Assembly: GCA_038496445.1 (NCBI GenBank)
Contig: JALMLS010000111.1
Span: 1-51,443 of the forward strand
Source: Trichosphaerium sp. ATCC 40318
Lineage: Eukaryota > Protista > Tubulinea
Reading direction: 5' to 3'
DNA: 51,443 nt
Positions 1 to 45,784 of this stretch are shown here, in pieces. Every line of letters begins with the position of its first letter. Within the stretch, counting starts at the first letter, position 1. The translations under genes and the position numbers were made by a program. The notes under the pieces are model-generated. The model was not told the origin of the DNA. It worked only from the letters and a program-made list of their open reading frames with translations, and made no database searches.

Positions 1-3000
1 TTTGAGGTACTTGACACTTGATTTGTTTCCTAGATTCAAATATGATTATTGTTTAACATCAATACAATTGATTGTTGTTGTGTTACACACGTACCACAAA
101 ACACAAGAATAGGTATTTTACTCCATTTCTTATTTTGCTTAATTATACTTTTCACCAAGTGCTCTGCTGCATTCTCATCTCCATCACCTTTACGGTACCT
201 GTTTGTTATAATACGTAGCCTGTTATTACAATATCCTTTAAACTTTTGAAGCCATGCCAAAACCTCTGAGGATGACATCATTGACAAAACCTTTGGAGTG
301 TTAGTACCCCTTCAACATATTCTATTTGGTTTGTGTACCTCTGTTTTCTTTGGCCGAGCTTTTAATAGCTTTACAATCTCTTTGTTCTCATTGGATAAGT
401 TATCGTCAACCCATAAGATGAGACACTTTGCATCTCTGTACTTGATGTTGAACTGTGATAGATTGATAGTGTTTGTGCTTTGATAATAAACAAGGTATCT
501 CGGAAGAATCTGTTAAAACAGAAAGTTAGAAGAAAACTGCCAAAGGTTATTAACAGATGTGAGGTTCGTACTTGTTTGTTGGAGAATACAACAATTTCAT
601 CAAAGTCTGGTTTTTCATGTTTTTTACAAGGATAGCAATTGCGAGCATTTGTTGTTTTTTTAACAATAGCATAGTGTGAATCGTATCCATCCTATTTTTG
701 CTGTTACACCACAACTAATGGGTAATTAATGGATTACCTTGCATCCTTTTCCGTAGAGGCTGTTTGGATCAAGAGGGTCAGGAACCTCAGTAGCTGGATA
801 AGGTTTTCCCATCATCACCCACGATATCAGCATACAAGGAGTATCTGTCTTGTTCCACTCAGCATACACCTTTCCTACAACAGTTTTATTAGCTCCAAGC
901 ACATGACTATAAACACGTACCATAGTCTGGGTATTGTGTAAAGTAGATACCATTCCCTTTGTAATAAAGTAAATCAGACACGTGCACATTGAAAAAGCAA
1001 CAGTACCAAAGAATCCTGCATCTTTCTTGCCTTTTGACTTTAACTTTGTTGGGTCTCTGAAGTTGTTGGTCGCAATTGAAAAACTGATGTGCTATGTATG
1101 CGTATAAGTAGCATACTTAATATGATGACAGTACCTCTGTTGTGCCGTGAAACCCACCAATGAGATTGATTTGCTCATTACCAGAAACACGAAGAGTGTA
1201 ATTTTTCAAATGGTTCATTGTCCGTTCTTGTGCTTCAAGTTTATTTTTATCAACTGCACTCAAACTACTATCGCGAATATCTAGATGATGGATTAATAAG
1301 AATTGCTAGCAAATGTTCAATCACTTACTTGAAGATTTAGATTGAAGTACTTTAGCAACGAGCTGTTCATATTTTTTTTGGAATGCAGCTTCAAGTGTTT
1401 GATTGTCAAAGAATACAATCTTTTCAAGTTTAAAGAACGACTCACTCTCAGTACCCATAAACTTGTAGAACATATTGCGAGCTCTCAAGTACTCATCACA
1501 ACGCTCCTTTTTAGATCAGTCAGCAAAGATGAAATACCAAGTCAGAATGCCAAGTTGGACAAAGTGTTACACATACTTTAGTTGTTTCGTTGCTTGTGAG
1601 AGAAGTCCATCTCAAACCTGGATACTTTTTCTTGTTCTTTTTCCAATTGCCTTGTGTTAAAAATTGTTCACCATGAAGACTGCTCCACAACCTATTGTGG
1701 CTTATTGTCAGAACAGGAAAGCCCTCTTTCAAGTGAGAGGCAGTGACAATATCTCCTATCAGATTGTTGTAAGCAAAGATGACCTTCACATTGTGGTTAC
1801 CTGTTTGTTCAAACTTATATGGAGGTTTTGTAGCAACAATAATATGACCGTTTTGAATACTTGCAGGGCATAGCTGAACTTGTCTACCTTCCAATGGTGC
1901 TAAGTATGATCCAATACATTTCTAAACATACATGAATTCTTACTTAACTACTATATTTGCTATCGTACCTTCCATAACCATGGCACCTTGCCTCTGATCA
2001 CAATGTTTACCACATTGTTACTATAGTACAGCACAATTGTGTTACCATAAAAATCATTCAATACAATCAGATTTGAAAAGAGGCGGAACTCTTTGTTTTG
2101 GAACTCTAGATATTTTGTAAGCATAAATACCACATTATTTCGGTGCTTCCCTCTTAATCTTGTTTGCAAGTTATTAAACGCATCTATTGACATTTCACTG
2201 ACTTGGTATGCTAAGAACTTTGAAACGGCTGATATGTGCTCATATTTGTCGGGAAGTGACTAAAGGTTGTTTAGCAACAATAACAATAAGAAAGCAAAGA
2301 AAAAACTGAGGAAAAAACATAAGCGAGAACATGTGTTTCAAACGTACTATTTTTTGAGTATTCTCATTTTTCTTGATTGTTTTAATCGTCTTGGTTACAA
2401 AACTATTATCTTTTTTAGGTATGAATGATAGTAACCTCCACTTTGTTGGCAACTTGCTCAAGTAAAACACATCAGAAAATATGGATAGTTCCTCCTTCCC
2501 TTCTTTAACTAGATCGATACTGGTGTCCTTTTCTGTCACAGGCGGAAAGTACAACATATCAGCTTTAGGCAATAATGAAATTATGACATATCCATCTGAG
2601 CCGTATACTTTCTAACCACAGTAAGTAAATAATGTACCAATAAACATGGTACCTTTTCTTCTCTTGTCAAGCGAACACAAAATGACAATTTAACCAAGAA
2701 TCTCATCACTTGCTTCACATCATCCACAGCACACTTTTTGAATACCTTTGAGATGCGGTAATGGGCCTCTGCATCTGTGAATACAGCACAGTGATTTCGA
2801 GACTTTTCATTTAACAATCTGTTCAGGTGTTCTGTAGGAGCAACAAAGACACTCATAATACGAGATAGAATGGGAGGGTCTAAACATGACATGTATGATG
2901 ACTAGAGGATAATTAAAACGAGTTCAATCTCATAGAAAATGCTTTAGGCAAGCAGTACCTCATCAAACATAATGCTACCAATAGAGTGAAGGTAATTTAA

Positions 3001-5551
3001 CGAGGCAACCAACTCAATTGGAGCCATTTTACATGTCTTAGGTAATAGTTTGATGACTTGTCCACTATCAAAATGTTATTCATCAGTGTTGTTGTAAATA
3101 ACAATCAACGTACATTGATATGATGTTACCCTTCAATCTATCCTTTTTCACAACTGCTTTCTTTAATGCTTTTTGTACTTCGTCATAAAGAGTTGGTACT
3201 TTTGGGTATTGTGACTTCATGTATTTTGCCTGACGCTTCAATTGTTTCTCAAGACCAGAGATACCTTTTGAAACAACATTAGGAGCCTTACTTAGTTTAA
3301 AATAAAACAAGTACCATCTAAGCAAAACACAAGGTACACTGATGATGTCATCTGATTGAAGGAGTATAGTGCTTTTTTATTGTCTTTTAAGTCTCCTGAA
3401 TGAATATCCAACTTGGATCCATATACTATCACTGAGTAGAATGTTCCATCTTGTCCACGCAAAAACTTACTAAGGGTATGAACCCAGTGTGTCAAGTGCT
3501 TCTTTTGTTCCACAATTGATAGTGATAAGTCAATCTAAAATAAATATTGATAAGAAAATGTTTGTGCACGTGGTCTTAGGATCCTTACAACAATGATGTA
3601 AATGGCAAGTTGTTTTGTGAAAAAATACTTGTGAAGTCCTTTGTATTCCATCTGTCCAGCAAAGTCTAAAACAGTGAATGATAAATCACCATATCTACAT
3701 GTTAGTGTTATGTCTTGTATAGAATATCAAACAAACGCACAATAGAGAAGAGGTATCAAAGCCAACTGTTGAATCAACACTGTCATCTTTTTCACCTGAC
3801 AACATCTTTACTAAAGTTGTCTTTCCTAATATTTATGTCAATGTAAAGAAACTCATATTGCTTGAGCATACCTGATCCTCCATGACCCACAACCAACAAT
3901 TTTGCTTTCAGTTGCTTCATGTATTCATATTCTGTGTGATCCATACCAGAAGCAATAGTTGATGGCTTTTTTTGATGGAACATTTTGTAATATTCACCTT
4001 GAAATTGTTCTTTTGTAATGTCGTGTATCTTTATTGGTATCACACGTGCCCCTGGAATATCACGTGCTTTTATTGTAACTAGTATCAATGTGAGTGCATA
4101 GTTAAATATGAGAATACTATTGGTATGTACCTTGATGTAATGATATCTCAGGGTCATGTAAACAAAGATCATAAACAAATACCACATCGCACACACAATT
4201 GTGTTCATCTGTGTGTTGTCTTATTCGTTCAACAACTTGAGTGAATGTCTCTTTTTTAACAATCTCAAAAATTAAGGATTTTTGACATGATATTTGGAAA
4301 GTGTCATTTGGTAAAGTAAAAAACGTGGGAGTTATAAACCAGTCATTCAGCTTCTTGAAATACTTCATATCTTCTGAAAATACATACACATCTTCAATGT
4401 CTGTGGATGTACTTTTGGTATAAATTATTGGCATTTTGAAAAAGGCGTGTTGATTGGGTTCTCCAGAAATCTTGGTATCTGCCAGATTACGAAAGTTGTC
4501 ATCCACAAAGTCACCAATGTATTTGGTACCATCTGGCCAATAATACTCTCCTTTTCCTGTTTTCTTGCCATCCACAAAGTCACCAATGTATTTGCTACCG
4601 CTTGGCCAAAAATACTCTCCTTTTCCTGTTAACTTGCCATCCACAAAGTCACCAATGTATTTGGTACCATCTGGCCAGTAACGCTCTCCTTTTCCTGTTT
4701 TCTTGTCATCCACAAAGTCACCGATGTATTTGGTTCCACTCGGCCAATAATACTCTCCTTTTCCTGTTTTCTTATCGTCCACAAAGTCACCAATGTATTT
4801 GGTACCATCTGGCCAATAATACTCTCCTTTTCCTGCTCTTGTCATCCACAAAGTCACCAATGTATTTGGTACCATCTGGCCAATAATACTCTCCTTTTCC
4901 TGTTCTTTTGTCATCCACAAAGTCACCAATGTATTTGGTACCATCTGGCCAATAACGCTCTCCTTTTCCTGTTAACTTGCCGTCCACAAAGTCACCAATG
5001 TATTTGGTACCACTCGGCCAATAATACTCTCCTTTTCCTGTTATCTTACCATCCACAAAGTCACCAATGTATTTGGTACCATCTAGCCAATAATACTCTC
5101 CTTTTCCTGTTCTCTTGCCATCCACAAAGTCACCAATGTATTTGGTACCATCTGGCCAATAATGCTCTCCTTTTCCTGTTAACTTGCCATCCACAAAGTC
5201 ACCGATGTATTTGGTACTGCTTGGCCAATGATACTCTCCTTTTCCTGTTATCTTGCCATCCACAAAGTCACCGATGTATTTGCTACCATTTTCATAGCCT
5301 ACGTATTTGGTTATCATCTTAAAATTCTCTTCAAAACATTAGAACTTACCACCAACATTGTTATCACAGTACCATGTCTGTTCGCCTTTACCATGTCTGA
5401 TACCACTTTTTAAAGTCCCTTTGTAAAAAGAACCTTCATCCAGAATGAATATTTTACCTACATAAGGATTATTGATAACAACTTCAAAAAAAACAATAAG
5501 ACGCTTACTAAAAACCAAAAAATCGCCTTGAGCGGATTTACTTTTGTCCAT
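1..5551 (-). CDS. Multi-exon Roco-family protein: MORN repeats - Roc GTPase - COR - PARP-like ADP-ribosyltransferase - receiver-like domain; 3' end runs off the window; apparent 2-nt frameshift in the MORN array near 4835
   Basis: Manual splicing via GT-AG introns. Starts MDKSKSAQG at 5551. MORN units YIGDFVDGKxTGKGEYYWPDGTK. Roc motifs: KLLVVGHGGSG|KTTL (P-loop, split by an intron near 3870-3826), STVGFD, LDFAGQMEYKGLHKYFF, IVYGSKLD. ART motifs: GGFHGTTE (~1150), DAGFFG|NGIYFTQYPDYG, SWVMMGKPY, GYDSH, DFDEIVVFSNKQ|ILPRYLVYY. Then ILWVDD...RIITNRYR...IPILVFCG. The COR assignment rests mainly on position after Roc. Confidence 0.85.
4495..5292 (-). repeat. Tandem 69-bp coding repeat, about 11.5 near-identical MORN units
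   Basis: Unit on + strand approximately ccatccacaaagtcaccaatgtatttggtaccatctggccaataatactctccttttcctgttaacttg; one unit lacks 2 nt (cctgctctt vs cctgttctctt). Confidence 0.95.
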
Positions 5552-6568: not shown

Positions 6569-8584
6569 TCAAAGATTCATTACATTGGTTTGAAGCTTTT
6601 CACAGAGTTCAAGTTCTGAAGTGAGATCTTCTTCATCAGAAGAGGACAATGCATCAATCTAAAAACTAATTAACTCATATACACTAACAATGTATTGTAA
6701 TAAATATGTAGTGACTTGTTACAAAACGCGTTTTTTTGGTTCAAACAAATGACGTACTTCAGAATCATAGTATTTCTTGAATTTTTCCATCTTTTCAATC
6801 CAACCATCTACAAACATCAGTCAGTAGCTGTTTCCATTGAACTGTTAATGTCTAAAAGTACATACCTTCAATTGACTCAGCATCTGACGTTAATAGGTCT
6901 TTTATAAATTCAACATAGCGTATGAGTAGAACAGCTTTACGAATACAATTGTTTTCGAAATAATCTTCTTGTTCCTGAAAAAAACAAAAAAAGATTGTAA
7001 GTACACGTGACTTGTTAAACAGAGATTTGTTGTTCCCCATACATTATCTTGAGTAAACTCTAATTTATCAGTAAATGCTACTTTATCATCTTGACGTGTT
7101 TCATATGATGTACTAAGGGTAAAACATCAGATGATGAGTGTTAAATCTAAACGTTCTTAAACGTACTCAAAAGAATAGTTGCTTGAAGCGTCATCCTCAG
7201 GCTCATCCATTTTCACGAGTATCACTGACCCTTTAGTACGACCCTTATCATCCATTATTGAGGGACAAGTACTCTTTATCTGGCACAACACACCTTCTTG
7301 AGGCTGTTCACAACCTTCGGTAAAGAGTAAATGACACATGGCACAACAAACGACAATAGATTGACTTTGACTCAAACGAGTTACGTACCTGGAGATCCAT
7401 AAACACGCTTGACATTATGACCTTGTGCTTTAAACTCTATTTTGATATTATAACAATCGATGGTTGTAATATAATCAAAGTCTGTAACCAACAAGTCATT
7501 GAATTCTTTTGGTGTTTTAACAGTGAAATAGTTACAACCTCTTGTATCTGTTATGATCGATACTGCTGAAGTATCAAACTGTGCGCCAATACCAACAAAC
7601 GTGGTGTATATTTTCTTGTTTGCCATTGCTTCAAAGGAAGGTTGAAGATCCTTTGCAAAGGCTCCCTACCGTAAAAGATTAGCCGACATGCCTTTGGTGA
7701 AAGTCGTACAGCATTGATTCGCATATCAGTGAAGAAGAACATTCTGTGTTCTCTCTTCTCTTTCACATCTTTCAACGCATCTTCAAGCATGATCTTTCCT
7801 GCCCTATAGCCTATCATACGAGGTGTTTTAGAAAGTGTAAGTGTCAAGACAGTAAGGTGAGTACCTTTTTCAAGATTTGTTCCACCTCGTGGTTGTACTT
7901 TTTCTATTCTCTGTTTGAGAGCATCTTTATCAACATCAGACCAACGTGTGAGTGGTAATAGATTCTCAGTAGTTGTATCAAATAGAACGATGCCCAAAAA
8001 GTCATCATCACGTATATTACTTAGCATACCAAGCATACTTTCTTTAGCAACTTCCATCTAAAAAACAAGGTCAAATCTTTGGACGAAGACAAATTAACCA
8101 GGGCATCTTCAGTCATTGTCTTAGCCGCCCAAGCTTTTATCCTAAAGAAAGACATACACATGATTTACTCTGACTATAGCTCATGCGACTTCTCATAGAT
8201 CCTGAGATATCCATGACAATAACAGTGTTCAAAGGTAACCTTTCATTGTGCTCATACAATCCTTTTCCATCAAGTTTTCCTGACATACCAATACACACGT
8301 GTCTTTCAATGTCACCTTTTTATTTTATTAAAGAACTAAGAAAAATAGCCACAGTGACAAACCAGCCAGTAGATTAGCATACCTGTTATAGGATTCCTTG
8401 ATTTACTTTTGAAATAGCGAGGTGAGAAGTATTTTTCTTTTTCTTGCTCTCCAACGTTGAATTTATGCTTATAAAGCATCCCTTCATATGTAATACTTGA
8501 TTCTGGTGGTAAAATGTCGCTATGTACATAACTACTGAACGCTGCAATGTCCTTTGCGCCTGCACTACTAGCTGCACAACCCAT
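6569..8584 (-). CDS. vWA (MIDAS) domain protein, copy 1, multi-exon, N-terminal MGC acylation-like motif
   Basis: MGCAASSAGAKDIAAF...LPPESSITYEGMLY; LNTVIVMDISGSM (DxSxS); LGIVLFD; PRGGTNLEKG; MFFFTDM; TTFVGIG; ends LQTNVMNL*. GT-AG introns throughout. Confidence 0.9.
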
Positions 8585-9110
8585 GACAAGCGGGTTTGTT
8601 GTTAAAGTTCGAAGGATATTTTTCAAATAAAATACAAATAAAAAGTACAAAAAGGTCCTTTTCACTTAACATACGCAGCGTGCGAAACACAGGCGCTATC
8701 AGTGTCGTGCGTTGTATGTCAGCGGTTGGCAGTATCATCAGTTTTTTGACTTATATCTATTTTCACGTGATTCTTAACCATTGGCTTATCGCCATCTAAC
8801 TGGTTTTCTGTTGGAAGACAATGCCATGAAAATGGAGAAACATTCCTTTTTTCGCACCCAAGCTATGCAGTTTTTTTTGCTTAACGAGTATATGTCAATA
8901 AGGTACGATAGAGTTATTACACTTATGTGCACATTGCTGTTGAACTAGTTCAGAGTAAGATTGGATGGCTTCCATTCAACACTACCTTTATCTGGTTAAA
9001 CACGTGTGCCCAACAGGCGTACTAAGGTAAACCTCATATTTATTGAAACATAAGCCAAGGATATCCAAAGTTAGGTATCCACAACAAACTTCATGCTTTG
9101 TACCACAATA

Positions 9111-9893
9111 TCATTCTGACATCAAAGCTTGCACACCCCATATCCTATGTGCACCTTTCAATACCTTTAGGCCCTCTTTTGTTATCAATTTGCAGTAGTG
9201 CAAGTCGATAGTGTGTACACCTACCAACGCCTTCAAACCTTCATCTGTCACTGGTACATGATGTAAATCAATATCATGTACACCAGCCAATGCCTTGATA
9301 CCTTTATCTGTAATTGAGGTATCTTCTAACGTGATAGTATGTACACCAGCCAAAGCCACCAAACCTTCATCTGTTACTTGTGTCCAAGATAAATATATTG
9401 CATGTACTCCCGCTAATGCCTTTATACCTTCATCCGTTATGTACTTACAAAACTGCAAAAAAATAGTGTGCACGCCTGCCAATGCCTTCAAACCTTCATC
9501 TGTTACCTTTGTAGATGTTAAATCAATCTCGTGAACACCAGCCAATGCCTTGATGCCCTCATCTGTTATATATTCGCAGTAATCCAAGTTGATTCTGTGT
9601 ACCCCTGCAAGTTGATATAAGTGACTATTGTGTACTTCAAAGTCACGAAACCAGATGAGCGTGTTCTTCAGTATACGTTCGTTTTCTGAAAGCAGTTTCA
9701 ACGCGGTTTCGCTTTTAACGTTGATTTGATCGTACCCAACAATATCATGGACGATGTCGTGGAGTGCGTGACATGTTTGGGCTCTAGTGCGTGCAAACAT
9801 CCCTTGTTTCAGTATGAGCACTATTATTTCGACTGGGAGCGCAATAAGGTCGAGTATGTCCTTGCAAGCATTTTCTGCGTTCACTTTCTCCAT
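9111..9893 (-). CDS. F-box-like + LRR protein (LAGVHTIxLxxTxVTDEGxKA repeats), no intron seen
   Basis: ORF 9111..9902, first ATG at 9893; N-terminal LIALPVEIIVLILK (F-box-like) followed by about 8 repeats of 21-22 aa. Confidence 0.85.
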   Translation of the reverse strand: MEKVNAENACKDILDLIALPVEIIVLILKQGMFARTRAQTCHALHDIVHDIVGYDQINVKSETALKLLSENERILKNTLIWFRDFEVHNSHLYQLAGVHRINLDYCEYITDEGIKALAGVHEIDLTSTKVTDEGLKALAGVHTIFLQFCKYITDEGIKALAGVHAIYLSWTQVTDEGLVALAGVHTITLEDTSITDKGIKALAGVHDIDLHHVPVTDEGLKALVGVHTIDLHYCKLITKEGLKVLKGAHRIWGVQALMSE

Positions 9894-10020
9894 TTTCTTC
9901 AATAACGTTTGTTTTGAAGCCGTTAGTAATAGAGGTGACTGATTAGTGCAACCAAGGGTTGAAAGTTGGGCAAAGTTGTTCCGCCTTGACTTAAACGGAC
10001 CGACACAGATAGCACTTACT

Positions 10021-10759
10021 ATGGCAATAAGGCGAACGGTACGCCATTATTATCGATTATTAACTTTCTAAAGAGACTTAGGTACAAACTGAGCGAATAT
10101 CATTTACCAAACTGCTACTGGAGCTGCCAGTTGAGCTACACCTCGATATAATGGATTTTTCATGCGAAGCGTATGTCAAATGGCCATTATTCTGTAAACT
10201 AACAGCGATTACGTCTCGATTTAATGACACGTTTGAAAAACACGGTAGATGGGTTAAATACACCTCTGATGGTAATAAATACCATCAACGCGTATATGAG
10301 AATGGTTTAAAGCAAGGAGAAGAAAAAAAATGGTGGAGAAAATCGAGTACACTTAAACTTGAGTGTCATTTCATTGATGATAAGTTGAATGGATTGTACA
10401 GGTCTTGGTATGCTAATAGTCAGTTGTCACAGGAGGTTCACTATGTAGATGGTAAGATGCAAGGAAATGGTAGGGAGTGGCATGAGAATGGTATGAAGTG
10501 TAGGATAGGTAACTATGTTGATGATAAAAAGGAAGGAGAGTTTCGTTGGTGGAACAACAGTGGTCAATTGATTATACATTGTTTTTATGTTAATGGTAAA
10601 CAACAAGGAGAGTATAAGGCATGGCATGATTGTGGTCAATTATATGAGAAGTATAATTGTGCTAATGGTAATATTGAAGGTGAATATAAGCGTTGGTTTG
10701 AAGATGGTGATTTATGTGAGCATTCTATTTATGAGAATGGTAAAATAGTACTAAGCTAG
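10021..10759 (+). CDS. F-box-like + MORN2 (YwqK-type) repeat protein with a short 5' exon and one 43-nt intron
   Basis: ATG GCA ATA AGG CGA ACG|gtacgc...gacttag|GTA CAA (intron 10039-10081) joins in frame to LLELPVELHLDIMDF and the 10151 ORF with GxYxxWYxNGQL repeats. Confidence 0.8.
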
Positions 10760-19482: not shown

Positions 19483-20096
19483 TGAAGGCAAAAAACGTGT
19501 AACTCTTTGAAACGTTTTGAGTTTTTGCGCTTTTTTTGAAGTCGTCACGAGTCCAAGCAAAAAAAGAAATCGACGCTAATGTACTACACTTAAAGGTATG
19601 TTATGGTACTTTATATAAATGATGTTAAAAGCCGCGAAGTTCGTCACTGATCTTTATTTTTTGACATACAAAAATGGCATAGTTTTGCTAGTCCAGCGAC
19701 TGGTATTTGTATATAAACCCACTCGATACACTAATCGTTCAAGTTCTTCCAGTACTTCCACTACTTCCTTGTCCAAAACAGGCCGTTCATGGAACACTTC
19801 TTTCACGTGAAGAATTTATCAGTTGTAGGGGATTCTTACCTTCCATCATATTCTATGTAGAGTAATAATAATCTTGAGGGTGACCCTTGTTCGAGATGAC
19901 TAAAAAACAGTAAACAAAGAGATTCTCTGAACTATTTTTCAAATAGCTAGTTTAACTGAGCGTTGACGGGTTTATGAATAGTACCTGTGTACGCCGTTGT
20001 ATACGTTGCTTTTGCTGACGTCTTTTGGTTAAGTTTGTTGCCGGATAAGCCTTGTAACGTTAAACAAACACAGTTTTATTGTTTAAACAACGCGTC

Positions 20097-22308
20097 ATGG
20101 GTGGAGCTATAAGTACAGGTGCAAAAGGAACGGCAGCGTTCGGTAGTTATGTAGATAGAAACATGTTACCACCAGAATCAAGTATTACATATGAAGGGAT
20201 GCTTTATAAGCATAAATTCAACGTTGGAGAGCAAGAAAAAGAAAAATACTTCTCACCTCGCTATTTCAAAAGTAAATCAAAGAATCCTATTACAGGTACG
20301 TTAACCTATAAGAATTCAGTACAAAAACAAAATATTAAACAGTTCTGTGTAAAACAAAAATAGATTTCGGCTTAAACTTAACCATCTCATTAAGTCGGTG
20401 TTTTTGCTTTCTTCTTTTGATCTTGCTTGATCCAAGTCGAAGATGTCTTCTTCTTTCTTTCTCTTTGTTTCTTTTCCCTTTTACTAAGATATTGTATAAA
20501 AAGGCGATATTGAAAGACACGTGTGTATTGGTATGTCAGGAAAACTTGATGGAAAAGGATTGTATGAGCATAATGAAAGGTTACCTTTGAACACTGTTAT
20601 TGTCATGGATATCTCAGGATCTATGGGTAGTCGCATGGGAGATAAAGAAAAAAATTGTGTACGCTTAGATCAACTTATCCTCCAGCGACAAGAGCTGTGC
20701 GGCTGAGACATTTCTGAAGATTTCCAACCTAACATTTCTTTATACAAAGATTTGACTCTGTTTTTTTTTAGATGGCAGTAGCTAAAGAAAGTATGCTTGG
20801 TATGCTAAGTAATATACGTGATGATGACTGTTTGGGTATCGTTCTATTTGATACAACTACTGAGAATCTATTACCACTCACACGTTGGTCTGATGTTGAT
20901 AAAGATGCTCTCAAACAGAGAATAGAAAAAGTACAACCACGAGGTGGAACAAATCTTGAAAAAGGTACTCATTATCTTGACACTTTACGATTCTAAACAA
21001 CCTCGTATGATAGGCTATAAGGCAGGAAAGATCATGCTTGAAGATGCATTGAAAGATGTGAAAGAGAAGAGAGAACACAGAATGTTCTTCTTCACTGACA
21101 TGCAAATCAATGCTGTACGACTTTCACCAAAAGGCATTTGAAGTGTCGGCTAATCTTTTACGTAGGGAGCCTTTGCAAAGGATCTTCAACCTTCTTTTGA
21201 AGCAATGGCAAACAAGAAAATATACACCACGTTTGTTGGTATTGGTGCACAGTTTGATACTTCAGCAGTATCGATCATAACAGATACAAGAGGTTGTAAC
21301 TATTTCACTGTTAAAACACCAAAAGAATTCAATGATCTGTTGGTTACAGACTTTGATTATATTACAACCATCGATTGTTATAATATCAAAATAGAGTTTA
21401 AAGCACAAGGTCATAATGTCAAGCGTGTTTATGGATCTCCAGGTACGTAACTAATTTGAGTCAAAGTCAATCTATTGTCGTTTGTTGAGATGTGTCATTT
21501 ACTCTTTACCTAAGGTTGTGAACAGCCGCAAGAAGGTGTCTTGTGCCAGATAAAGAGTACTTGTCCCTCAATAATGGATGACAAGGGTCGTACTAAAGGG
21601 TCAGTGATACTCGTGAAAATGGATGAGCCTGAGGATGACGCTTCAAGCAACTATTCTTTTGAGTACGTTTAAGAACTTTAGATTTAACAATCATCTGATG
21701 CTTTACCCTTAGTACATCATATGAAACACGTCAAGATGATAAAGTAGCCTTTACTGATAAATTAGAGTTTACTCAAGATAATGTATGGGGAACAACAAAA
21801 CTGTTTAACAAGTCACGTGTACTTACAATTTTTTTTTTTTTTTCAGGAAGAAGAAGATTATTTCGAAAACAATTGTATTCGTAAAGCTGTTCTACTCATA
21901 CGCTATGTTGAATTTATAAAAGACCTATTGACCTCAGGTGCTGAGTCAATTGAAGGTATGTACTTTTAGACATTAACAGTTCAATGGAAACAGCTACTGA
22001 CTGATGTTTGTAGATGTTTGGATTGAAAAGATGGAAAAATTCAAGAAATACTATGATTCTGAAGTACGTCATTTGTTTGAAACCAAAAACACGTTTTGTA
22101 ACATGTGCCACTTATTATTTAATACGCTTTATTGTGTAATGTGTGCGCAAGTTAATTTGTTTTTTAGATTGATGCATTGTCCTCTTCTGATGAAGAAGAT
22201 CTCACTTCAGAACTTGAACTCTTTGAAAAGCTTCAAACTATTGTAAAGAAAGCAGTCGAGGCCCAACAAGAAAAAGATGCCGCCAAAACCAACGAAGAAG
22301 AGCAATAA
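20097..22308 (+). CDS. vWA (MIDAS) domain protein, copy 2, inverted paralogue of 6569..8584
   Basis: Same exon structure and near-identical exons (e.g. identical MANKKIYTTFVGIG ORF); starts MGGAISTG; ends KTNEEEQ*. Confidence 0.9.
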
Positions 22309-23577: not shown

Positions 23578-24672
23578 ATGGACCACGCAAAAAGCAATAA
23601 AACACAGGTTAAATTAGCGTCTGATACATCAAATACAAGGTAATTAATTGTTATGACCTAAAATAACGTTTGTAGCGGTCAAAAAACGTTATTGGACATA
23701 CCTAATGAGATTCTGGCTACAATTTTGACTCTCACAAAAGACCGATTTGCTGTGTGTCAAACGTGTCACATCATCTCTTCTGTCATTCACGACATTGTTG
23801 GTTACCACAGTATAAGTATAGCAACAAAAGAACAAGCAAGAAAAGCTGCAAAACACGAAGGAATCATTAAACACACAAAAATCAAGTTATTGGCTGATAA
23901 GTATTTTTTTCCTCCAGCCAAGATTCTGGCGCTATTCGCAGGAGTTCATACAATCTATCTCAGGAACACAAATGTCACAGATGAAGGACTGAAATCACTT
24001 GCTGGTGTTCACACTATTGATCTTTCATATACTAAAGTTACAGATGAAGCATTGAAGGCACTTGCAGGCGTTCACACTATTAATCTTTCATGTACTGAAG
24101 TGACAGATGAAGGTGTAAAAGCACTTGCAGGCGTTCATACTATTGATCTTTCATGTACTACAGTGACAGATGAAGGTGTAAAAGCACTTGCAGGTGTTCA
24201 TACTATTAACCTTTATCTCACTGACGTGACAGATGAAGCGATGAAAAGTCTTGTAGGTGTACACACCATTAACATCGACAATTGTACGAATATTACTGCT
24301 GAAGGATTCAAAGCACTCAAAGATGTCCATGACATTCACCTCAGCTGTCCAAAAAACGACTCCTTTCTCACACACCTTTGCAACGTACACTCTGTTTCTA
24401 TTCACTTTGGGAACATGTTGACAGATGACGCAATCAAAGCATTGACGAATGTCAAGCACCTTGAGCTTGTCATGTGCCCTCAAATAACAGACTTGAGCTT
24501 TGAGACATTGTTCAACCTTGAGCATCTCAGACTGGGTGGATGTACCAAGATAACAAATGGTTGTTTGAAACACTTAAAATCTCTAAAACGTTTCACAGAG
24601 GTGGCTACGTCTAGAATCACAAAAGAGGCTGTTGAGTCGATGGGTATCATATATGTACCAATAAATCAATGA
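23578..24672 (+). CDS. F-box-like + LRR protein with a short leader exon and one 36-nt intron
   Basis: ATG 23578 MDHAKSNKTQVKLASDTSNT-AG|gtaatt...ttgtag|C (intron 23640-23675) joins in frame to LLDIPNEILATIL and AGVHTI LRRs. The ORF-track start at 23692 is a TTG. Confidence 0.85.
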
Positions 24673-25532
24673 TAGTCCTATTTACCAGATAGTTTCGAAG
24701 TACAGTAGATGTTAGCAAAGGGTTTTGATTTGTAAGTATGCCCAAACAAAGAGTCATTTTAAACAAGTTTTAATAGGAAAATATAAATACCACGTGTGAT
24801 AACCACAATCCCCTTTTTTTCCCAATTCACATATTCAAGTTTGCTAGCACTTTGGTATTTTTATTTGGAACAAGAACGTTTGTATTGAATACCTTACACC
24901 CACAGATAACTGCAACGCAAATGCTAACAAGAAAAAAATGTCCTGAAAATGAAACCCGACAAGGGTTTTGGTTAAGGTACATTTACTGGAGTTGTGGAAT
25001 GTGATGAACTCATATTGCATTGTACCTTAATAGATCATGACAGAACTTGCCAGAACTAGCTAAAAACAGATCTGCTAGTTCTTGTAAGATCTTACACTTT
25101 GAAGTGTAAAAATAAGTGTACAAAACTTGATCCTGTCTACACGTATCCAAAGTGCCTCCTAGCACGCACGTGACTTTCTGCTTTTATGCTTATATAAATT
25201 ACTCCACAAGGATACACTAATGGTATAGCTTGCAGACTTGCACAAGGCTACCTATGCTCAAAAACCATCCCGAAAAATCAGGCTTAACACTAAAACAAAA
25301 TAGCGTTATTTCAGGACAAATCCTATACTAGTCGACTTCTATTTGGCATATGGTTTTTAGCTATCGTTTAAACTTGTCTTACTATTAATAGAGTTAAATG
25401 GTAAGAACGCGGTTGACTACATACCGCTTCAGTTTTTTTTATCCTGAACGGCAAAATTGGCGGGCGCACCAATAGCAGCAAAGCAGCAATCTGTTTAGGC
25501 AATAATTAAAGAAATAAGTGTCGAACAAACAG

Positions 25533-27092
25533 ATGGAAAATACCGCGACTGAGCTTGTAGCACTCCCAGTCGAAGTAATCGCTCATATTCTCAAACAAGG
25601 AACATTTACACTGCGCTCAGCGCAGACGTGCCGCTTATTACGTGATATCGTCCATAATATCATCGGATACGGCAAAATATTTGTCAAATCTGAAAGCGCA
25701 GCGAAAATCCTTTCAGGAAGTCCTTTGCTGAAGAATACCAAAATCTCTTTTTTTCGAAACTTTAGAGAGCACGTGAATGACAACTATCTGAAACTCCTCG
25801 CAGGAGCACATACTATCAACCTAGATAACTGTCAGTCAATAACAGATGATGGTATCAAGGCATTGGCCGGTGTACATACTATTGATTTATCACGTACAAA
25901 AGCAACAGATGAAGGCATCATGGCGTTAGCCGGTGTACATACTATTGATTTAGTAGAGACAAAAGTAACAGATGAAGGTGTAAAGGCATTGGCTGGTGTA
26001 CATACTATTTATTTATCAGAGACAAAAGTAACAGATGAAGGTGTAAAGGCATTGGCCGGTGTACATACTATTGATTTATCACGTACAAAAGTAACAGATG
26101 AAGGTTTAAAGGCATTGGCTGGTGTACATACTATTTATTTATCAGAGACAAAAGTAACAGATGAAGGTTTAAAGGCATTGGCCGGTGTACATACTATTGA
26201 TTTATCACATACAAAAGCAACAGATGAAGGCATCATGGCTTTAGCCGGTGTACATAATATTAATTTAAGACACACAAATGTAACAGATGAGGGTTTAAAG
26301 GCATTGGCTGGTGTAAATTCTATTGATTTATCACAGGCAAAAGTAACAGATGAAGGTGTAAAGGCATTGGCCGGTGTACATATTATTGATTTATCACGTA
26401 CAAAAGTAACAGATGAAGGTGTCAAGGCATTGGCAGGTGTACATACTATTGATTTAGCAGAGACAAAAGTAACAGATGAAGGTGTCAAGGCATTGGCCGG
26501 TGTACATACTATTGATTTATCATGTACAAAAGTAACAGATGAAGGTGTCAAGGCATTGGCTTGTGTACATGAAATTTATTTATCACGTACAAAAGTAACA
26601 GATGAAGGTGTAAAGGCATTGGCCGGTGTACATACTATTGATTTATCACATACAAACATAACAGATGAGGGTTTAAAGACATTGGCCGGTGTACATACTA
26701 TTTATTTAGCAGAGACAACAGTAACAGATGAGGGTTTAAAGGCATTGGCTGGTGTACATACTATCACCTTATTTAATTGTTTATCAATAACAGACAAAGG
26801 TATAGTTTTTTTGGCAGGTGCACGTGTTATCGATTTATCGCACACAAATGTAACAGATGAGGGTTTAAAGGCACTGGCTGGTGTACATGAGATTTATTTA
26901 ATACGTACAGATGTAACAGATGAAGGTATAGCTTTTTTGGCAGGTGTACACAAGATTGATTTATCACGGACAAATGTAACAGATGAAGGTTTGAAGGCGT
27001 TGGTAGGTGTACATGAAATTTATGCTAAATTATGTAACTTTATTACACAAAAGGGCATCGAGGTGTTACATGGTGCATACAAAGAAATGTAG
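25533..27092 (+). CDS. F-box-like + about 20 LRR protein, intronless, 63-bp tandem coding repeat
   Basis: LVALPVEVIAHILKQ followed by LAGVHTIDLSRTKVTDEGVKA units; DNA unit approximately ggcattggccggtgtacatactattgatttatcacgtacaaaagtaacagatgaaggtgtaaa. Confidence 0.92.
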   Translation: MENTATELVALPVEVIAHILKQGTFTLRSAQTCRLLRDIVHNIIGYGKIFVKSESAAKILSGSPLLKNTKISFFRNFREHVNDNYLKLLAGAHTINLDNCQSITDDGIKALAGVHTIDLSRTKATDEGIMALAGVHTIDLVETKVTDEGVKALAGVHTIYLSETKVTDEGVKALAGVHTIDLSRTKVTDEGLKALAGVHTIYLSETKVTDEGLKALAGVHTIDLSHTKATDEGIMALAGVHNINLRHTNVTDEGLKALAGVNSIDLSQAKVTDEGVKALAGVHIIDLSRTKVTDEGVKALAGVHTIDLAETKVTDEGVKALAGVHTIDLSCTKVTDEGVKALACVHEIYLSRTKVTDEGVKALAGVHTIDLSHTNITDEGLKTLAGVHTIYLAETTVTDEGLKALAGVHTITLFNCLSITDKGIVFLAGARVIDLSHTNVTDEGLKALAGVHEIYLIRTDVTDEGIAFLAGVHKIDLSRTNVTDEGLKALVGVHEIYAKLCNFITQKGIEVLHGAYKEM

Positions 27093-27722: not shown

Positions 27723-28837
27723 AAGCAGAAGTATAGATATTATAGTTGTAGTATTCGTATGCTCCACTAGATGAAAAAATACATTTTTCTTTTAACCAAG
27801 TATTCTTGTTGCAAAAAAATTGTGGTTTAACCCACGGTTTTTGTAAAAACTGGTCCAATGTGTTGTACGTGTTAATCAAAGCGTATCAAGGCGAAACAAT
27901 AGTATATATAAAGATTTTGTTGTTGGGATTTAAGATGTGGAGTTATGAAGTAAATCGAGAGTGGCTTTTTGAGAAACAAATGTGAAAAAAGTGAAATTTT
28001 GAAAAGACTTAAATGCAACTTACACTGGTTTCTATGTTACCGTGTGGTATATTCTACGCGTATTTTGAGACATTTCTATAGTTACAATGGATATTAAGCC
28101 AATACAAAATAATTTCAATCCAAAGAACTGAGAATCTGCTTAATCAACCTTTATTTACAAGTGGTATGTTATTAATGTCATGCAAGGTGCTTTTTGAGCT
28201 GTTCTGATCCAAAAAAAGGTCGATATTTCTGTTGTAGCTTCTCTAAAGCTCTTGTCGCTCAAAACGTGCCTCGATTTTATAACGTAGATGAATGATAGCG
28301 TTGGTGACGGTTTGAACCTATTACATGCCTTTTTGGTTCAAAAAAAACGTGATCGTACCGTTGCTCATTTTCTGTTGACTTTTGCTCTCAAACAAGCTTA
28401 ATTTGTTAAGATTTCCCTCCAAGACTCCTCAGAGTTTGGTGCACAGCTGTATCTAAGGCGTACCGCAATACGTATAGAACCTTTGTAAAAAGTGTCGTTT
28501 GAGAATAGAATCGTATGAAAGGTATTAATCGTCACTACGTTGAGTCTTTGCAGGCTACTGTAAGTTTAAGGCGTAGCAGCCTGAAATCAAGAAAGTTTAA
28601 GACTTTCGAACAGAGATGTATCTTTGTTAGACACTATACCCGATCACGTGATTAATCTAAGACAGTAATGGGAAAAAAGGAATTGAGCAAGTTTTTCTTC
28701 AGCACAAGTTTGTTTACAATAAAGTATAATCATCAAACATCGGGTCATTTCACAGAAACGGTTTTACGGCGCGATCCGGACTGATCTGGAAAGCAGCCTT
28801 ATCTGTAAACTTACACTGCTAAAACAACACTTCTTCA

Positions 28838-29977
28838 ATGGCAACGAACGCACACTTTAGAGATTCCTTTTCATCCTTAGAACCTACACACAAAGGCACC
28901 TACAGAGACCTACATAGCATTCCTCGAGAGATACTGCTTTATATTATGGATAAACACCATGAAGCATACGTAAAGATGCCTATGTTATCAAGAAAAATAG
29001 CTCTAACAAGGTTCGATGATCGTCTCGAAAAGCACGGCAAATGGGTGAAAAGAAAGCGTATTATTTTTTCACACCATCACCCAAAGGAACATATTGTACA
29101 AGTACATTACTGGATACATGGCGAATTAGCACAATTTATCAAGTTTCTTTGGGTACCCGTAGAATTTAACACCGAGTCCTTGTGCAGGCTACCAACTGAG
29201 AAGCTACATTGGGTAAATTTCGAACAACAAGAAAAAGTACATATCACGTGGTACAGCAATGGTCCCATAAGGAACCTAAGTTTGTCAGATAATAATATAC
29301 TGCAAGGAGAGTTTAGAAGGTGGTACAAGTGTCACTATGTGAAGGGTAAACGTGAAGGAGAGTATAACAAATGGTATGAAAACAATATCTTGATGAAACA
29401 ATATTATTACGTGAACGGTAAACGACATGGAAAGTGCAAGCAATGGTATGATAACAGTATATTGAAATTAGACGCTACCTACAAACACGGGAACAAAGAG
29501 GGAAAGTATAGGAGTTTCCATTCAAATGGTCAAGTTAAAGTGGAGTGTAACTATGCAAAAGGCAATAGACATGGAAAGTACAGAGCGTTTAATAAGTCAG
29601 GAAGTTTAAGGAGTGAACGAAAATATGTCAATGGCAAAATCAAAGGTGCATATAGAACCTGGTACAGTAATGGTAAGATGAAACTACTAGCCATCTATGT
29701 CAATGGTAGAAAAGAAGGGTTGTTCCAGACATGGTACAGAGATGGAAAAATAGATACGCAATGCTATTACAGCCACAATGAACTTCATGGAGAGTATAAA
29801 GAGTATTACGATAATGGTCAATTAAAACTTGAATGCCAGTTTGTCAATGGTACACTCAAAGGAAGATACAAGGAGTGGTCCGTAAAAGGAAGATTGAGTG
29901 GAGAACGAGTTCTAAGTCCTACCCAGCACAGAATTAGAATAATACTTAGGCCTCCGCAATGGTCGATTAAAACTTGA
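28838..29977 (+). CDS. F-box-like + MORN2 repeat protein, intronless, paralogue of 10021..10759
   Basis: LHSIPREILLYIMDKHHEAYVKMP...RFDDRLEKHGKWVK matches LPVELHLDIMDFSCEAYVKWP...RFNDTFEKHGRWVK; about 9 MORN2 repeats; decayed duplicated repeat at 29958-30050. Confidence 0.88.
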   Translation: MATNAHFRDSFSSLEPTHKGTYRDLHSIPREILLYIMDKHHEAYVKMPMLSRKIALTRFDDRLEKHGKWVKRKRIIFSHHHPKEHIVQVHYWIHGELAQFIKFLWVPVEFNTESLCRLPTEKLHWVNFEQQEKVHITWYSNGPIRNLSLSDNNILQGEFRRWYKCHYVKGKREGEYNKWYENNILMKQYYYVNGKRHGKCKQWYDNSILKLDATYKHGNKEGKYRSFHSNGQVKVECNYAKGNRHGKYRAFNKSGSLRSERKYVNGKIKGAYRTWYSNGKMKLLAIYVNGRKEGLFQTWYRDGKIDTQCYYSHNELHGEYKEYYDNGQLKLECQFVNGTLKGRYKEWSVKGRLSGERVLSPTQHRIRIILRPPQWSIKT

Positions 29978-36997: not shown

Positions 36998-39900
36998 ATG
37001 ACCACAGAATTTTTACGTAAGTCGGAAGTTGATTACACAAAAACGTGGCTGGGTAGTTTTGAAGAAGGCCATTGGTATGTGAAGAAGAAGAAGGAGGGGT
37101 TGTTTTTATGTGGGTACGTACAGAAGGAAGTATATTTCCTGAGGACCTTAAAGTGTAATCGTTTTTGTTTAGGCCTAAGGGGTTCCGTTTTGGTCCCTTG
37201 GAGACTACAAAAGCAGTAGACGCTCCTGAAAAGAAGTGTGTCGTACTGTCGGCTACAGACGCGAAAATAATGGGGTTTGCTTACTCGACGCTGTATAAAC
37301 CAGACAAGGATAAGAAAGTGAAGAAAGGAATAAAAGAGCTACGCAAACTATCACGTGGCACGTTTGTAGGTACGCCAGTTTTTAGAGCAACAACTTGTTT
37401 ATTAGAGAGCGAAATTTGTTGTTGCAAAACACGTGTCATGTATCACGTGAGTGTTCGAACGACTATTGTTCGAAATATTGTTCGAAAAAACCACCTTTTG
37501 TAGTATTTTCGAACAAATTTTTTTTTAACAAAGCAACGCTTCTGTACCTTTACCATCGATTTTTGAACAACTAGTGAGCAGTCTGTTCGAAAGTTGTGTT
37601 ATTTTACTGTTTTTATCAAATTTTTCGAACAAAACGGGACTACTTTGTTCGAACACTTAGAAACTCCATATATTTGAATATTCCGATAGAAAAAAGGTTT
37701 TTACGTTAGCACAATTTTTTGATTAATGCAATTTTCGAACAAAACGTGCTTTAAAATTGCTTTTAATTTTTATGTGATTGTTGCTTACGTAAGATTTTAT
37801 AGCCACTCTACAGCGAATAATAGACGAAGATCGCGACAAACGAAACCGTACGTTGAACGGAGTTTTTCTGTTGTTTAGTAGACTTTTTCTGAAGTTACAA
37901 CGCTGATTATTTTTGTAGTTGCTGAATACAATAAAAAGGCGAAAGGGAAAAATGCTGTAGTGGTACGACGTGTTGCAATATGTCGCCAAACAGGAAAAAG
38001 ATTTTATTTTTTTCTCTTCTCACTTCACGTGCTCTTGTTGGCGCCTATTTGAGCTTGCTATGCTTGCTTTATAGCGACATATTTTCGAACAAATAGAACG
38101 CATTTGTAGTAGAATAGTTTTTTGGTTGACACGTTTGTTTAGCCTAAGGTTAGTGAAGCCGACGAAGAATTGGTTGTAAGTTGGGGAGTTTTTTCGTGCT
38201 GTTCTAATCTTGTTCTAGCTCGTCCTTCCATGGACTGTCTATATTCAATGGGATGGAGTTATTGCAACGTTTAAAGAAGGAAGAGATGCAGTAGTTGTAG
38301 CTGAAGATAAAGACAAGCTAACAACACTTGTGGTAACTCCAACCTGTTATGTTTACTGTTGATCGCTAACTGTTTTTGCAGAGCTACTTCTTTGCAAAGC
38401 CTACAGACTCCACTCCTAGTACCCTATTACAATGAATACTATACCATACCAACTAACATTCTTTAGAACCCAGGGCAATGCAAAGAAACATGAAAAAGTG
38501 GAATGGTGTATTCCCAAACAACTTTCTGGCAAAGGTACTTTTTTTGTCTTTAGTTCCGTTGTAGCCCCGTGGTTTTCAGTTTTATCATCACCATTTATCA
38601 TCAACATTTCACAAAAACCTTATCACATACAATACCAGTAAAGCTTCCACAGTGTGGTTGTGGAAGCACAGCTAACTTGAACGTAAAACTTGTTCAACAA
38701 AAAATTTTCACTTGAGTTGCAAAACTTCCTCCCAAGTAGTGATTGTAGTTAAGCCGTGTGACAAGAATCTAGATTGTATTATACTCTCTAATGACTACAC
38801 TTAACAGCTTCAAGCACAACTGTGGGAACTTTTTTTTTTAGCGAGGTTTGAAGCTCAAAACTGTTTTTGTCTAACTTTTTTTTTTATTACTTTCTTGTAA
38901 CAGCATGGACCGTTTTCTTACATCTTTTTAGGGAGGTCCATTCTCGTTCATGATAGACCAAGTATCAAACGCAAAGAAGCTCATATCAGAGATAAAACTT
39001 ATTAAGCCAGGGAACAGAATAATCTTGTACATGGCTTGTGGTCATTAACAACCATATTTTCACATTTTATTTTTCTGACTTTCTCATTTAGTACTAAGTG
39101 TGAGGTTCACACATTAATGTCTTTCTTCTTCCTTGGGTTCTTTGCAAAACAAAAGGACACTAAGATGAGCAGAGTATCAGAATTCAATGCAGGTGCATGG
39201 GTATTCTCTACACTTGTACAAAGACAACTTGTTGTTGCATTGACACATTACTTCAACCAATACAAGAATGTTTCAGACTTCAAAGATGATGATAAGGACG
39301 TAATAATCAGGTGGCTACAGTTGATACCTAAAGGTAAAATAGTAGATAGATAGTACATATGTAATTGTTAACATTAGAAGATGCTACAGGAACACCTCCA
39401 AATGTCCAAAAAAGTTGTGTTTTTGATGAACCTGATTGGGAGAATTCAAACCAACAACTTTGTGATCTTCAAGGTACAAGGTTTAAATTGTTTCATGGTC
39501 AACATATTTCATCTTTTAACTCTTTGTTCAAGTGGACCTTGAAGGTGGTCTTGAGGATGTTGATGGATCTTCTAAGATATGCTTTGCTGATCCAACACCT
39601 GGTGGAACAATATTATCTAGCAGTGGTTTGGTATGACTATCTTTCAATTTCAAGTATTTTGTTTACTAACTTATTTTTCTTGCAGCATTGGACACAAGAG
39701 GTAGCATTGATATTTGGCTAGAAACTCTTCCCCATATTTACTTATTGATATCATAGGAATTAATGATGGGTATTTTCCCAGAGGTATTAATGATGTTAGC
39801 GATAATACCGCACATTGATGACACGTGAGTCAAAACGACTTTTTCGTTTTGTTTGATGGAACTTTTTATCTTCATTGTTACTGAAACGTTTACTTTAAGG

Positions 39901-40719
39901 CAAGCTTGGTGTGTATCCAATGTGAATCGTTGTAGTGATTACAAAGGATATGATAGAAAGTTTAGGATCCAAAAGGAACCATCTAAGAATAACGACCTTC
40001 ATGAACTTATCGGCATTGATGGTAACTTTACTGTTTTTTTTTTGAATTTCATTAGCCGATTTTTTCAACCTTAACATTGTCATCATTGGCTGTTACTACT
40101 TGCTAATACCTTTCGTTTAGCAACAGTATTTGGGTCCAAAACAAAGGTAATGTGTTTCTTGTTTTCACCAAGTTGCATCTAAGAATATTTTAGGAAAGTT
40201 TATTGCGTGAATGTAACAAGGCTTACCTTGGATTTTCTTCAAGCTCAAACGACGTAATCGCCACTGGACATTGGTAAGCGCATAACAATTAGTAGCCATT
40301 GTACTTACCAATATCAAAGGGGCGGTGGTGTATTCAAGGGTGACAAAACAGTTAAAGCACTCGTTCAACTCATTGCCGCATCTCAAGGTAAGTTTTTTAT
40401 CACAAAGTTTTTGAAGAACGACTCACTTATATGCATCGCAGCAAGAAAAAAGCTTGTCTACAAAGCTTTCCGTGATGCTGATTTTAAAGATGGTCTGGAC
40501 AAAACATACAAGATGTTAGTTGACAATAAAGTGACAGTAAGCTCATACACATTCAACTAATTTGAAGTATTACTTTTTGATGTTTTTTTTTTCAAGGTGA
40601 AACAATTGTATAAGTTGGTAGAGGAGGCTACAGGAGAACTAAAGAAGGCTTCCAAGCACAAGGACCCAGTGTTGTGTGGATTTGCTTTAATTCAACATTT
40701 GATAACAAAGATGTTATAA
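36998..40719 (+). CDS. PARG: Poly(ADP-ribose) glycohydrolase-like protein (divergent PARG), full copy, many exons
   Basis: Spliced: EGGLEDVDGSSKICFADPTPGGTILSSSGL|HWTQE|ELMMGIFPEVL...CSDYKGYDRKF...ELIGIDA...LLRECNKAYLGF...IATGHW|GGGVFKGDKTVKALVQLIAASQARKKLVY. This matches canonical PARG motifs (QEE, YxGY, AIDA, RElNKAYxGF, ATGNWGCGxFxGD, K-x-L-x-Q). Confidence 0.88.
37451..37656. mobile_element. Possible MITE in PARG intron 2, TTCGAA-rich
   Basis: Terminal inverted GTGTTCGAAC...GTTCGAACAC, multiple internal TTCGAA(C) units, flanked by TGA/TTA. Confidence 0.4.
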
Positions 40720-40804
40720 GCGTTCAATCAAACGCTCTATTGAGGACAGATTTATCTAAACAAAAGCACTGATATATATTTATACTTTACTTAGAAATAC
40801 ATAG

Positions 40805-45500: not shown

Positions 45501-45784
45501 CTTGGTAGCAGACGACAGTGTCAACTCCAGCTTTTTTTTAGCAAAAAGTTTTGTCAGTGGTTGAGTATTTTCCGTTATGTTAATGTCAATAGAGCCGCAT
45601 GACTTGTAGAATAACCTAAACGACGTATGTATATTTTCAAAATAAACAGTGGGGCTTATGTTGAGTTGAAGGTACATCTTTATTTACAAAAAATCCTATA
45701 TGTATGACAGACAATGTATGTATTTCTAGGTAAAGTGATTTTGTACTACTTGTTTAGATATCAATAGAGAGTTTGATTGAATGC

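Follow-up and report, generated by a model that had tools for sequence, protein, structure and literature searches.

The first 5551 nucleotides of contig JALMLS010000111.1 from the amoeba Trichosphaerium sp. ATCC 40318 (assembly GCA_038496445.1) are filled by a single minus-strand gene for a Roco-kind protein with an unrecorded PARP-family architecture and a predicted function. MORN repeats, a Roc GTPase and a COR region precede a PARP-type ADP-ribosyltransferase (ART) and a pseudo-receiver. We are highly confident that this chain of domains is real. The window, that is, the whole stretch of DNA analysed, comprises 51,443 nucleotides with 36% guanine and cytosine (GC) and belongs to a compact eukaryotic genome. 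The 3' end of the gene lies beyond position 1, outside the window. All features are on the minus strand:

1..5551 (-), whole gene: about 1466 codons on 23 exons in the window, separated by 22 GT-AG introns (41-88 nt)
5350..5457 (-), exon 2: one degenerate MORN unit, Pfam MORN E 0.004
4496..5298 (-), tandem MORN array in a single exon: 11 units of the 69-nt type and a partial unit
4833..4840 (-), frameshift: seventh MORN unit of 67 nt, not 69
3905..4495 (-), linker of about 180 amino acids, interrupted by intron 4130-4079
3265..3904 (-), Roc GTPase: G1 3818-3887, G3 3652-3666, G4 3406-3420, G5 degenerate
2653..3264 (-), COR-A-like region, by relatives-only profile and hhalign
1802..2611 (-), COR-B-like region with an LCP motif at its end, by profile rank
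480..1506 (-), PARP-type (ARTD) ART with N-terminal helix: H 1147-1149, Y 943-945, E 596-598
1..434 (-), pseudo-receiver (CheY fold), cut by the window end

Evidence for the domain chain

The Roc motifs are an intron-split G1, STVG, DFAGQ (3652-3666) and GSKLD (3406-3420). Exon 6 matched the Pfam Roc family at E 1e-3 and a Roc profile of relatives only at E 1e-10. With a profile built without the window sequence, three Roc exons ranked first among 1710 natural stretches. The relatives themselves pass the Pfam Roc cut-off, and the best PDB match of their Roc is LRRK2. A preliminary description, made from the sequence alone, had listed a complete Roc GTPase; G1 to G4 are present, but G5 is degenerate.

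The COR region was assigned transitively. Exon 10 matched a COR-A profile of six relatives at E 1e-9 (hhalign 94.7%), exon 9 ranked second, and one member of the profile, L052, is a Pfam COR-A at E 1e-17. The profile found no COR in the PDB. By this indirect sequence evidence, COR-A appears to follow directly after Roc. With a COR-B profile, exons 12 and 13 ranked first and second of the 1710 stretches; they are collinear, but their E-values of about 0.2 are weak, and the equivalent region in relative L002 matches Pfam COR-B at E 8e-4. The first part of the COR-length region of the preliminary description appears to be COR-A by the profile of the relatives, but not by a direct match in Pfam or PDB. 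Single COR, ART and receiver exons had no match in Pfam because they are too short.

The PARP-type nature of the ART is best seen in P0002, which is encoded by a spliced transcript from Trichosphaerium sp. ATCC 40318 and is the best protein match to the window gene. P0002 shares 78-97% identity with exons 15, 16, 18, 19, 20 and 21 (78-96% over the ART exons 15, 16 and 18-20) and scores above the Pfam PARP cut-off (PF00644, 38 versus 26.7 bits). A profile of the ART family had PARP2 and PARP1 as best matches in the PDB; a phmmer search of the PDB with P0002 gave no match. The catalytic H, Y and E were located in the window gene as first described and are kept in P0002, P0010, P0007, L003 and L006. 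The equation of this triad with polymerising PARPs was an overreach. PARP4, a mono-ART, has the triad as well, and Met890 of the acceptor site plays a role (PMC6486540). In an alignment with PARP2, the position of PARP1 Met890 is a one-residue gap in the ART family, which makes mono-ADP-ribosylation the more likely predicted reaction, ahead of polymerisation. The ART is probably active in the family. AlphaFold gave the ART part a predicted local distance difference test (pLDDT) score below 50 in both models, of which the second was built from 14 sequences and resolved the receiver alone; the single-sequence model of P0002 had a pLDDT of 37.

The receiver part of the AlphaFold model has a pLDDT of 72-91. 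It superimposes on the CheY fold with Z 13.5 and a root-mean-square deviation of 2.8 over 119 aligned residues (Foldseek probability 1.0), in agreement with the receiver-like tail noted earlier. The DD pair is kept. By motif register, the phospho-Asp position holds a threonine (Thr or Ser in relatives) and the conserved lysine is absent after the last strand; the domain is therefore a pseudo-receiver. Among the nearest Atlas models are rotifer proteins carrying an arginine-type ART, which suggests that receiver and ART form a recurring partnership.

The MORN array matched Pfam at E 1e-38 and 2e-27. One degenerate, 11 tandem and one partial unit make about 13 units in all, the number originally counted. 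The units are 83-97% identical in DNA (mean 90%). Of 23 unit positions, 15 have an invariant amino acid and 8 change; among 10 units, all changes at position 11 (I/L/R/K) and position 17 (Y/H/R) are non-synonymous. MORN repeats serve in protein interaction (PMC7725318). In sequence, the units resemble the repeats of fungal NLRs, which are homogenised with local variation and known for high internal conservation (HiC; PMC4986451). The linker between MORN and Roc had no match in Pfam, PDB or the Roc profile, and a second GTPase considered for this region was not detectable by any of the three. The exons tested contain no transmembrane stretch.

Gene structure, transcripts and the frameshift

Three-frame reading yielded 21 introns; one more, the in-frame intron 1800-1756, came from RNA contigs, which also settled intron 737-692. 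The hand-spliced exons of the preliminary description had missed the in-frame intron. Ten of the 22 introns agree in length with RNA joints among those listed, and four further introns are implied by near joints. The introns matched by joint length are:

94-30, 338-291, 571-510, 737-692, 920-875 (-)
1328-1281, 1576-1507, 1800-1756, 1968-1922, 2652-2612 (-)

In the final gene model, the GC content is 0.37 for exons versus 0.32 for introns. The 3' part of the gene is free of stops for 1261 codons over 21 exons; in the other two frames there are 68 and 109. At intron 3740-3695, the donor is the uncommon GTGCGT and the branch point, CTAAC, is clear.

The transcripts support a single protein. One spliced 1926-nt RNA contig of a paralogue runs from 2901 in COR-A through the ART to 373 in the receiver. 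By joining COR to ART, this contig argues against separate genes for Roc-COR and ART, which the preliminary description had named as a refutation. Overlapping contigs cover the end of the MORN array, the linker and the start of Roc. The Roc-to-COR junction is an open frame and is spanned by no RNA contig among those listed. The contigs aligned to the gene with 88-100% identity and numerous alternative letters, a sign that many paralogues are expressed. The gene belongs to an expanded amoebozoan family. Within the window, there is no second copy. A full-length MORN-Roc-COR-ART protein was not retrieved from protein databases by searches that were length-limited and lossy. Three further candidates were discarded as spurious repeat matches: P0004 and P0005 by domain scan, and P0001, which was so judged from scattered hits of 33%.

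The preliminary description did not report that the frame of this copy is lost near 4836. The seventh tandem unit has 67 nt instead of 69, and a stop follows at 4787-4789. Recent pseudogene and assembly indel in the repeat have about even odds. The likely source assembly was made from long reads with short-read polishing (PMC10521059); such an assembly poorly resolves a 90%-identical repeat. RNA contigs placed on the array are ambiguous. A 2-nt insertion at 4835-4836 in RNA run X3 was considered as a correction of the frameshift and rejected because 22 of the X3 contigs can be placed at two positions of the array. A GT-AG pair at 4872/4833 is matched by none of the joints listed. The intact paralogues represent the family better than this copy.

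Relatives, known systems and the remaining window

Independent relatives in other protists share the core of this architecture. L008 is an uninterrupted open reading frame (ORF) of 1973 amino acids in which leucine-rich repeats (LRRs) and Roc are followed by a region of COR length, the ART, a receiver-like segment and an extension at the C-terminus. In L003, the order is Roc, COR, ART, receiver, broken by a single stop and a single frameshift. L004 has LRRs, Roc and COR, then ART-like and receiver-like segments; L032, L002 and L001 cover COR through receiver. G1, G3 and G4 are kept in the window gene, L003, L004 and L008 at an overall identity of about 25-35%. The N-terminal repeat is swappable, MORN here and LRR in relatives. 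A MORN array as putative sensor, as proposed at the outset, hence applies to this gene but does not define the family, since L004 and L008 use LRRs. The loci of the relatives span 26-64% GC, so several lineages are involved. L052 has a canonical Roc-COR-A-COR-B (LRRK2 match at E 2e-17) followed by a degenerate ART. In L052:52-2502, Roc has an insertion of about 100 amino acids between G1 and G2 and the degenerate ART lacks the His; L052 may be an independent fusion.

In a 62-row tree with arbitrary root, seven ARTs formed one group with support 99/88. For five of them, a link to Roc or COR is established; the other two, L006 and P0019, are fragmentary, with the upstream part unseen. The intron-split L004, L032 and L052 were left out of the tree. 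The sister group comprises protist proteins with an LRR/EGF ectodomain, one transmembrane helix and an ART. More distant ARTs are fused to kinase, NACHT, Sel1, U-box, TPR or SidE-type phosphodiesterase (PDE) domains, some from metagenome-assembled genomes (MAGs) of Chlamydiales and Gammaproteobacteria. Prokaryote genomes contained distant ART relatives only (26-31% identity); those scanned have kinase, ankyrin or TPR domains and no Roc. No relative was found among the viral contigs searched.

Some of these proteins deserve mention in their own right. The receptor-ARTs (L010, L013, L015, L016, L020, L024, L029, L030, L031, L039, L041, L051 and L067) are long ORFs free of introns. Each has a large ectodomain, which in the four scanned consists of LRR and/or EGF, a single strong transmembrane helix and a PARP-type ART about 185-200 amino acids beyond the helix; several have a signal-peptide-like start. 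They are built like receptor kinases and are possibly undescribed; those in the tree make up the sister clade of the Roco ARTs. Related ARTs are fused to NACHT (L044:2-3592), SidE-type PDE (L037:4992-7490), U-box (L049:197-2491), kinase (L069:2732-4807, from a Gammaproteobacteria MAG) or ankyrin/TPR (L070:3959-8158, from a Chlamydiales MAG). P0019 combines an ART (His to Arg) and a receiver-like segment with C2, ankyrin and PF10021 domains. By sequence, the PF10021 domain looks like a bacterial-type PARG, which would place writer and eraser in one chain.

Among known systems, Roco group 2 (LRRK1/LRRK2, Dictyostelium Roco kinases) is similar in having N-terminal repeats, Roc, COR and an enzyme directly after COR. 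No kinase domain follows COR here; the ART takes its place, with MORN for LRR/ANK/ARM and a pseudo-receiver for WD40. A review distinguishes three Roco topologies, none with an ART and without mention of PARP (PMC6337361). The brown-algal LRR-Roc-COR candidate receptors share the expanded family, the variable repeat sensor and pseudogenes (PMC11378527), but lack an effector domain and carry their LRRs on separate exons, one on each, unlike the single-exon repeats and the enzyme after COR in the window gene. That survey mentions neither PARP nor MORN. With the PARP/ARTD enzymes (PARP1/2, tankyrases, PARP3/4), the ART shares H-Y-E, the FGxGIYF motif and, in the paralogue, a PF00644 score above cut-off. 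Unlike these enzymes, it has no WGR, regulatory helical domain, SAM or ankyrin, in addition to the gap at Met890, and it falls into a separate group with the protist receptor-ARTs and the MAG proteins of Chlamydiales and Gammaproteobacteria.

Fungal HiC-repeat NLRs and TIR-type NADase receptors likewise combine a repeat sensor, an NTP switch and an NAD+-using effector, with near-identical repeats. The NTPase here is Roc, a Roc-COR GTPase instead of a STAND ATPase; neither NACHT nor NB-ARC was found. The order is also reversed, with N-terminal repeats. The protein is an analogue of NLRs at most, not a member. Aspartate-less or kinase-independent receivers of conflict systems have a CheY fold lacking the phospho-acceptor Asp and no histidine kinase in the protein (PMC8195603), as in this gene, where the receiver is instead fused behind an ART in a eukaryote. 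No description of Roc-COR-PARP was found in the full-text literature, with most subscription papers outside its scope. A PARP survey mentions no GTPase or MORN, and the Trichosphaerium genome paper no Roco or ADP-ribosyl gene. These searches and the Roco papers agree with the earlier statement that a MORN-Roc-COR-PARP architecture is undescribed.

Elsewhere in the window, an element of about 2.8 kb is present in three copies with 98-99.96% identity: 37771-40743 (+), 45761-48570 (-) and 48582-51443 (+). Together, the second and third copies make up an almost perfect inverted repeat around 48570-48742, either a mobile element or an assembly artefact. A VWA-domain gene is duplicated on opposite strands (6576-8587 and 20094-22250, about 92% identical). 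Intronless F-box-like/LRR genes and MORN_2 genes are located at 9114-10046, 23662-24669, 25518-27089, 10082-10756 and 28823-29974; these kinds of genes were reported as giant-virus-derived in Trichosphaerium by the genome paper.

Predicted mechanism and rival explanations

The family can be read as cytosolic Roco proteins with a PARP-type ART in place of the kinase, which would serve as a GTP-gated switch with ADP-ribosylation as output, likeliest in conflict with microbes. We give this reading an even chance. By analogy to the Roco mechanism, a protein ligand would bind the near-identical MORN repeats, the nucleotide and dimer state of Roc-COR would change, and the ART would be released. It would attach ADP-ribose from NAD+ in single units to targets or to itself, or use NAD+. 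The non-phosphorylatable receiver may serve as a docking module or a regulatory lid. The biological context would most likely be a conflict with giant viruses or bacteria. For the gating of the ART by Roc-COR, the analogy tips the balance slightly in favour; an immune rather than a housekeeping role, also argued by analogy, falls somewhat short of evens.

Several points weigh against this reading. The copy in the window is frameshifted as assembled, G5 is degenerate, and the COR of this gene and its closest relatives is without a direct match in Pfam or PDB. The catalytic His is an Arg in L008 and P0019, which suggests that activity is dispensable in some relatives. The array-wide ratio of non-synonymous to synonymous polymorphism (pN/pS) is 0.53 for 10 units; this indicates no overall positive selection, and diversifying selection is not demonstrated. 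That the GTP state is coupled to the ART is a pure analogy. The family is probably functional, though the window copy may be broken. In favour of the reading, brown-algal repeat-Roco families, which are proposed immune receptors, are rich in pseudogenes (PMC11378527).

The same enzyme and switch might instead serve housekeeping signalling, such as membrane traffic, phagosome or cytoskeleton control, or fusion and fission of the multinucleate amoeba. Characterised Rocos act in trafficking and signalling (PMC6337361; compare LRRK2 and the Dictyostelium Rocos), the sister clade with its ART behind an ectodomain and a transmembrane helix indicates that the ART can be a general signalling output, and paralogues are present in uninfected-looking transcriptomes. 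We nevertheless regard housekeeping as rather unlikely, as an arms race fits the many divergent paralogues, the homogenised variable repeats and the broken copy better. Still less probable is a Roc-COR that acts as passive scaffold or dimeriser of an ART whose activity is constitutive or set by the pseudo-receiver and does not depend on GTP. The highly diverged COR and the degenerate G5 are in line with it, as is the recurrence of the ART-receiver pairing without Roc in rotifer proteins; the conservation of G1, G3 and G4 in distant relatives speaks for a working switch. A family in decay, left over from the shuffling of repeats and exons and lacking any working ART, is very improbable. The frameshift in the window copy, the stop and frameshift in L003, a frameshift in L002 and the His-to-Arg exchange in L008 would agree with decay. 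The L002 break lies within an A-run, typical of a sequencing error, and the 1261 stop-free codons, the spliced transcripts and the triad kept in five relatives speak against it.

The GTP-gated ART extends to a wider proposal that we make tentatively: an old, single-origin Roco class across protist lineages, whose members would be intracellular immune receptors with variable MORN or LRR repeats sensing an invader protein, Roc-COR firing and the ART ADP-ribosylating targets or draining NAD+. If true, the Roco-ART class would be the GTPase-based counterpart of TIR-NLRs. For LRRK2, the debate continues on whether and how Roc-COR controls an adjacent enzyme. A Roco that naturally carries another enzyme, one easily assayed by its NAD+ use, would test Roc-COR as a general modular switch. 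For free-living amoebae, the hosts of giant viruses and intracellular bacteria, the family provides a concrete candidate receptor-effector of innate immunity.

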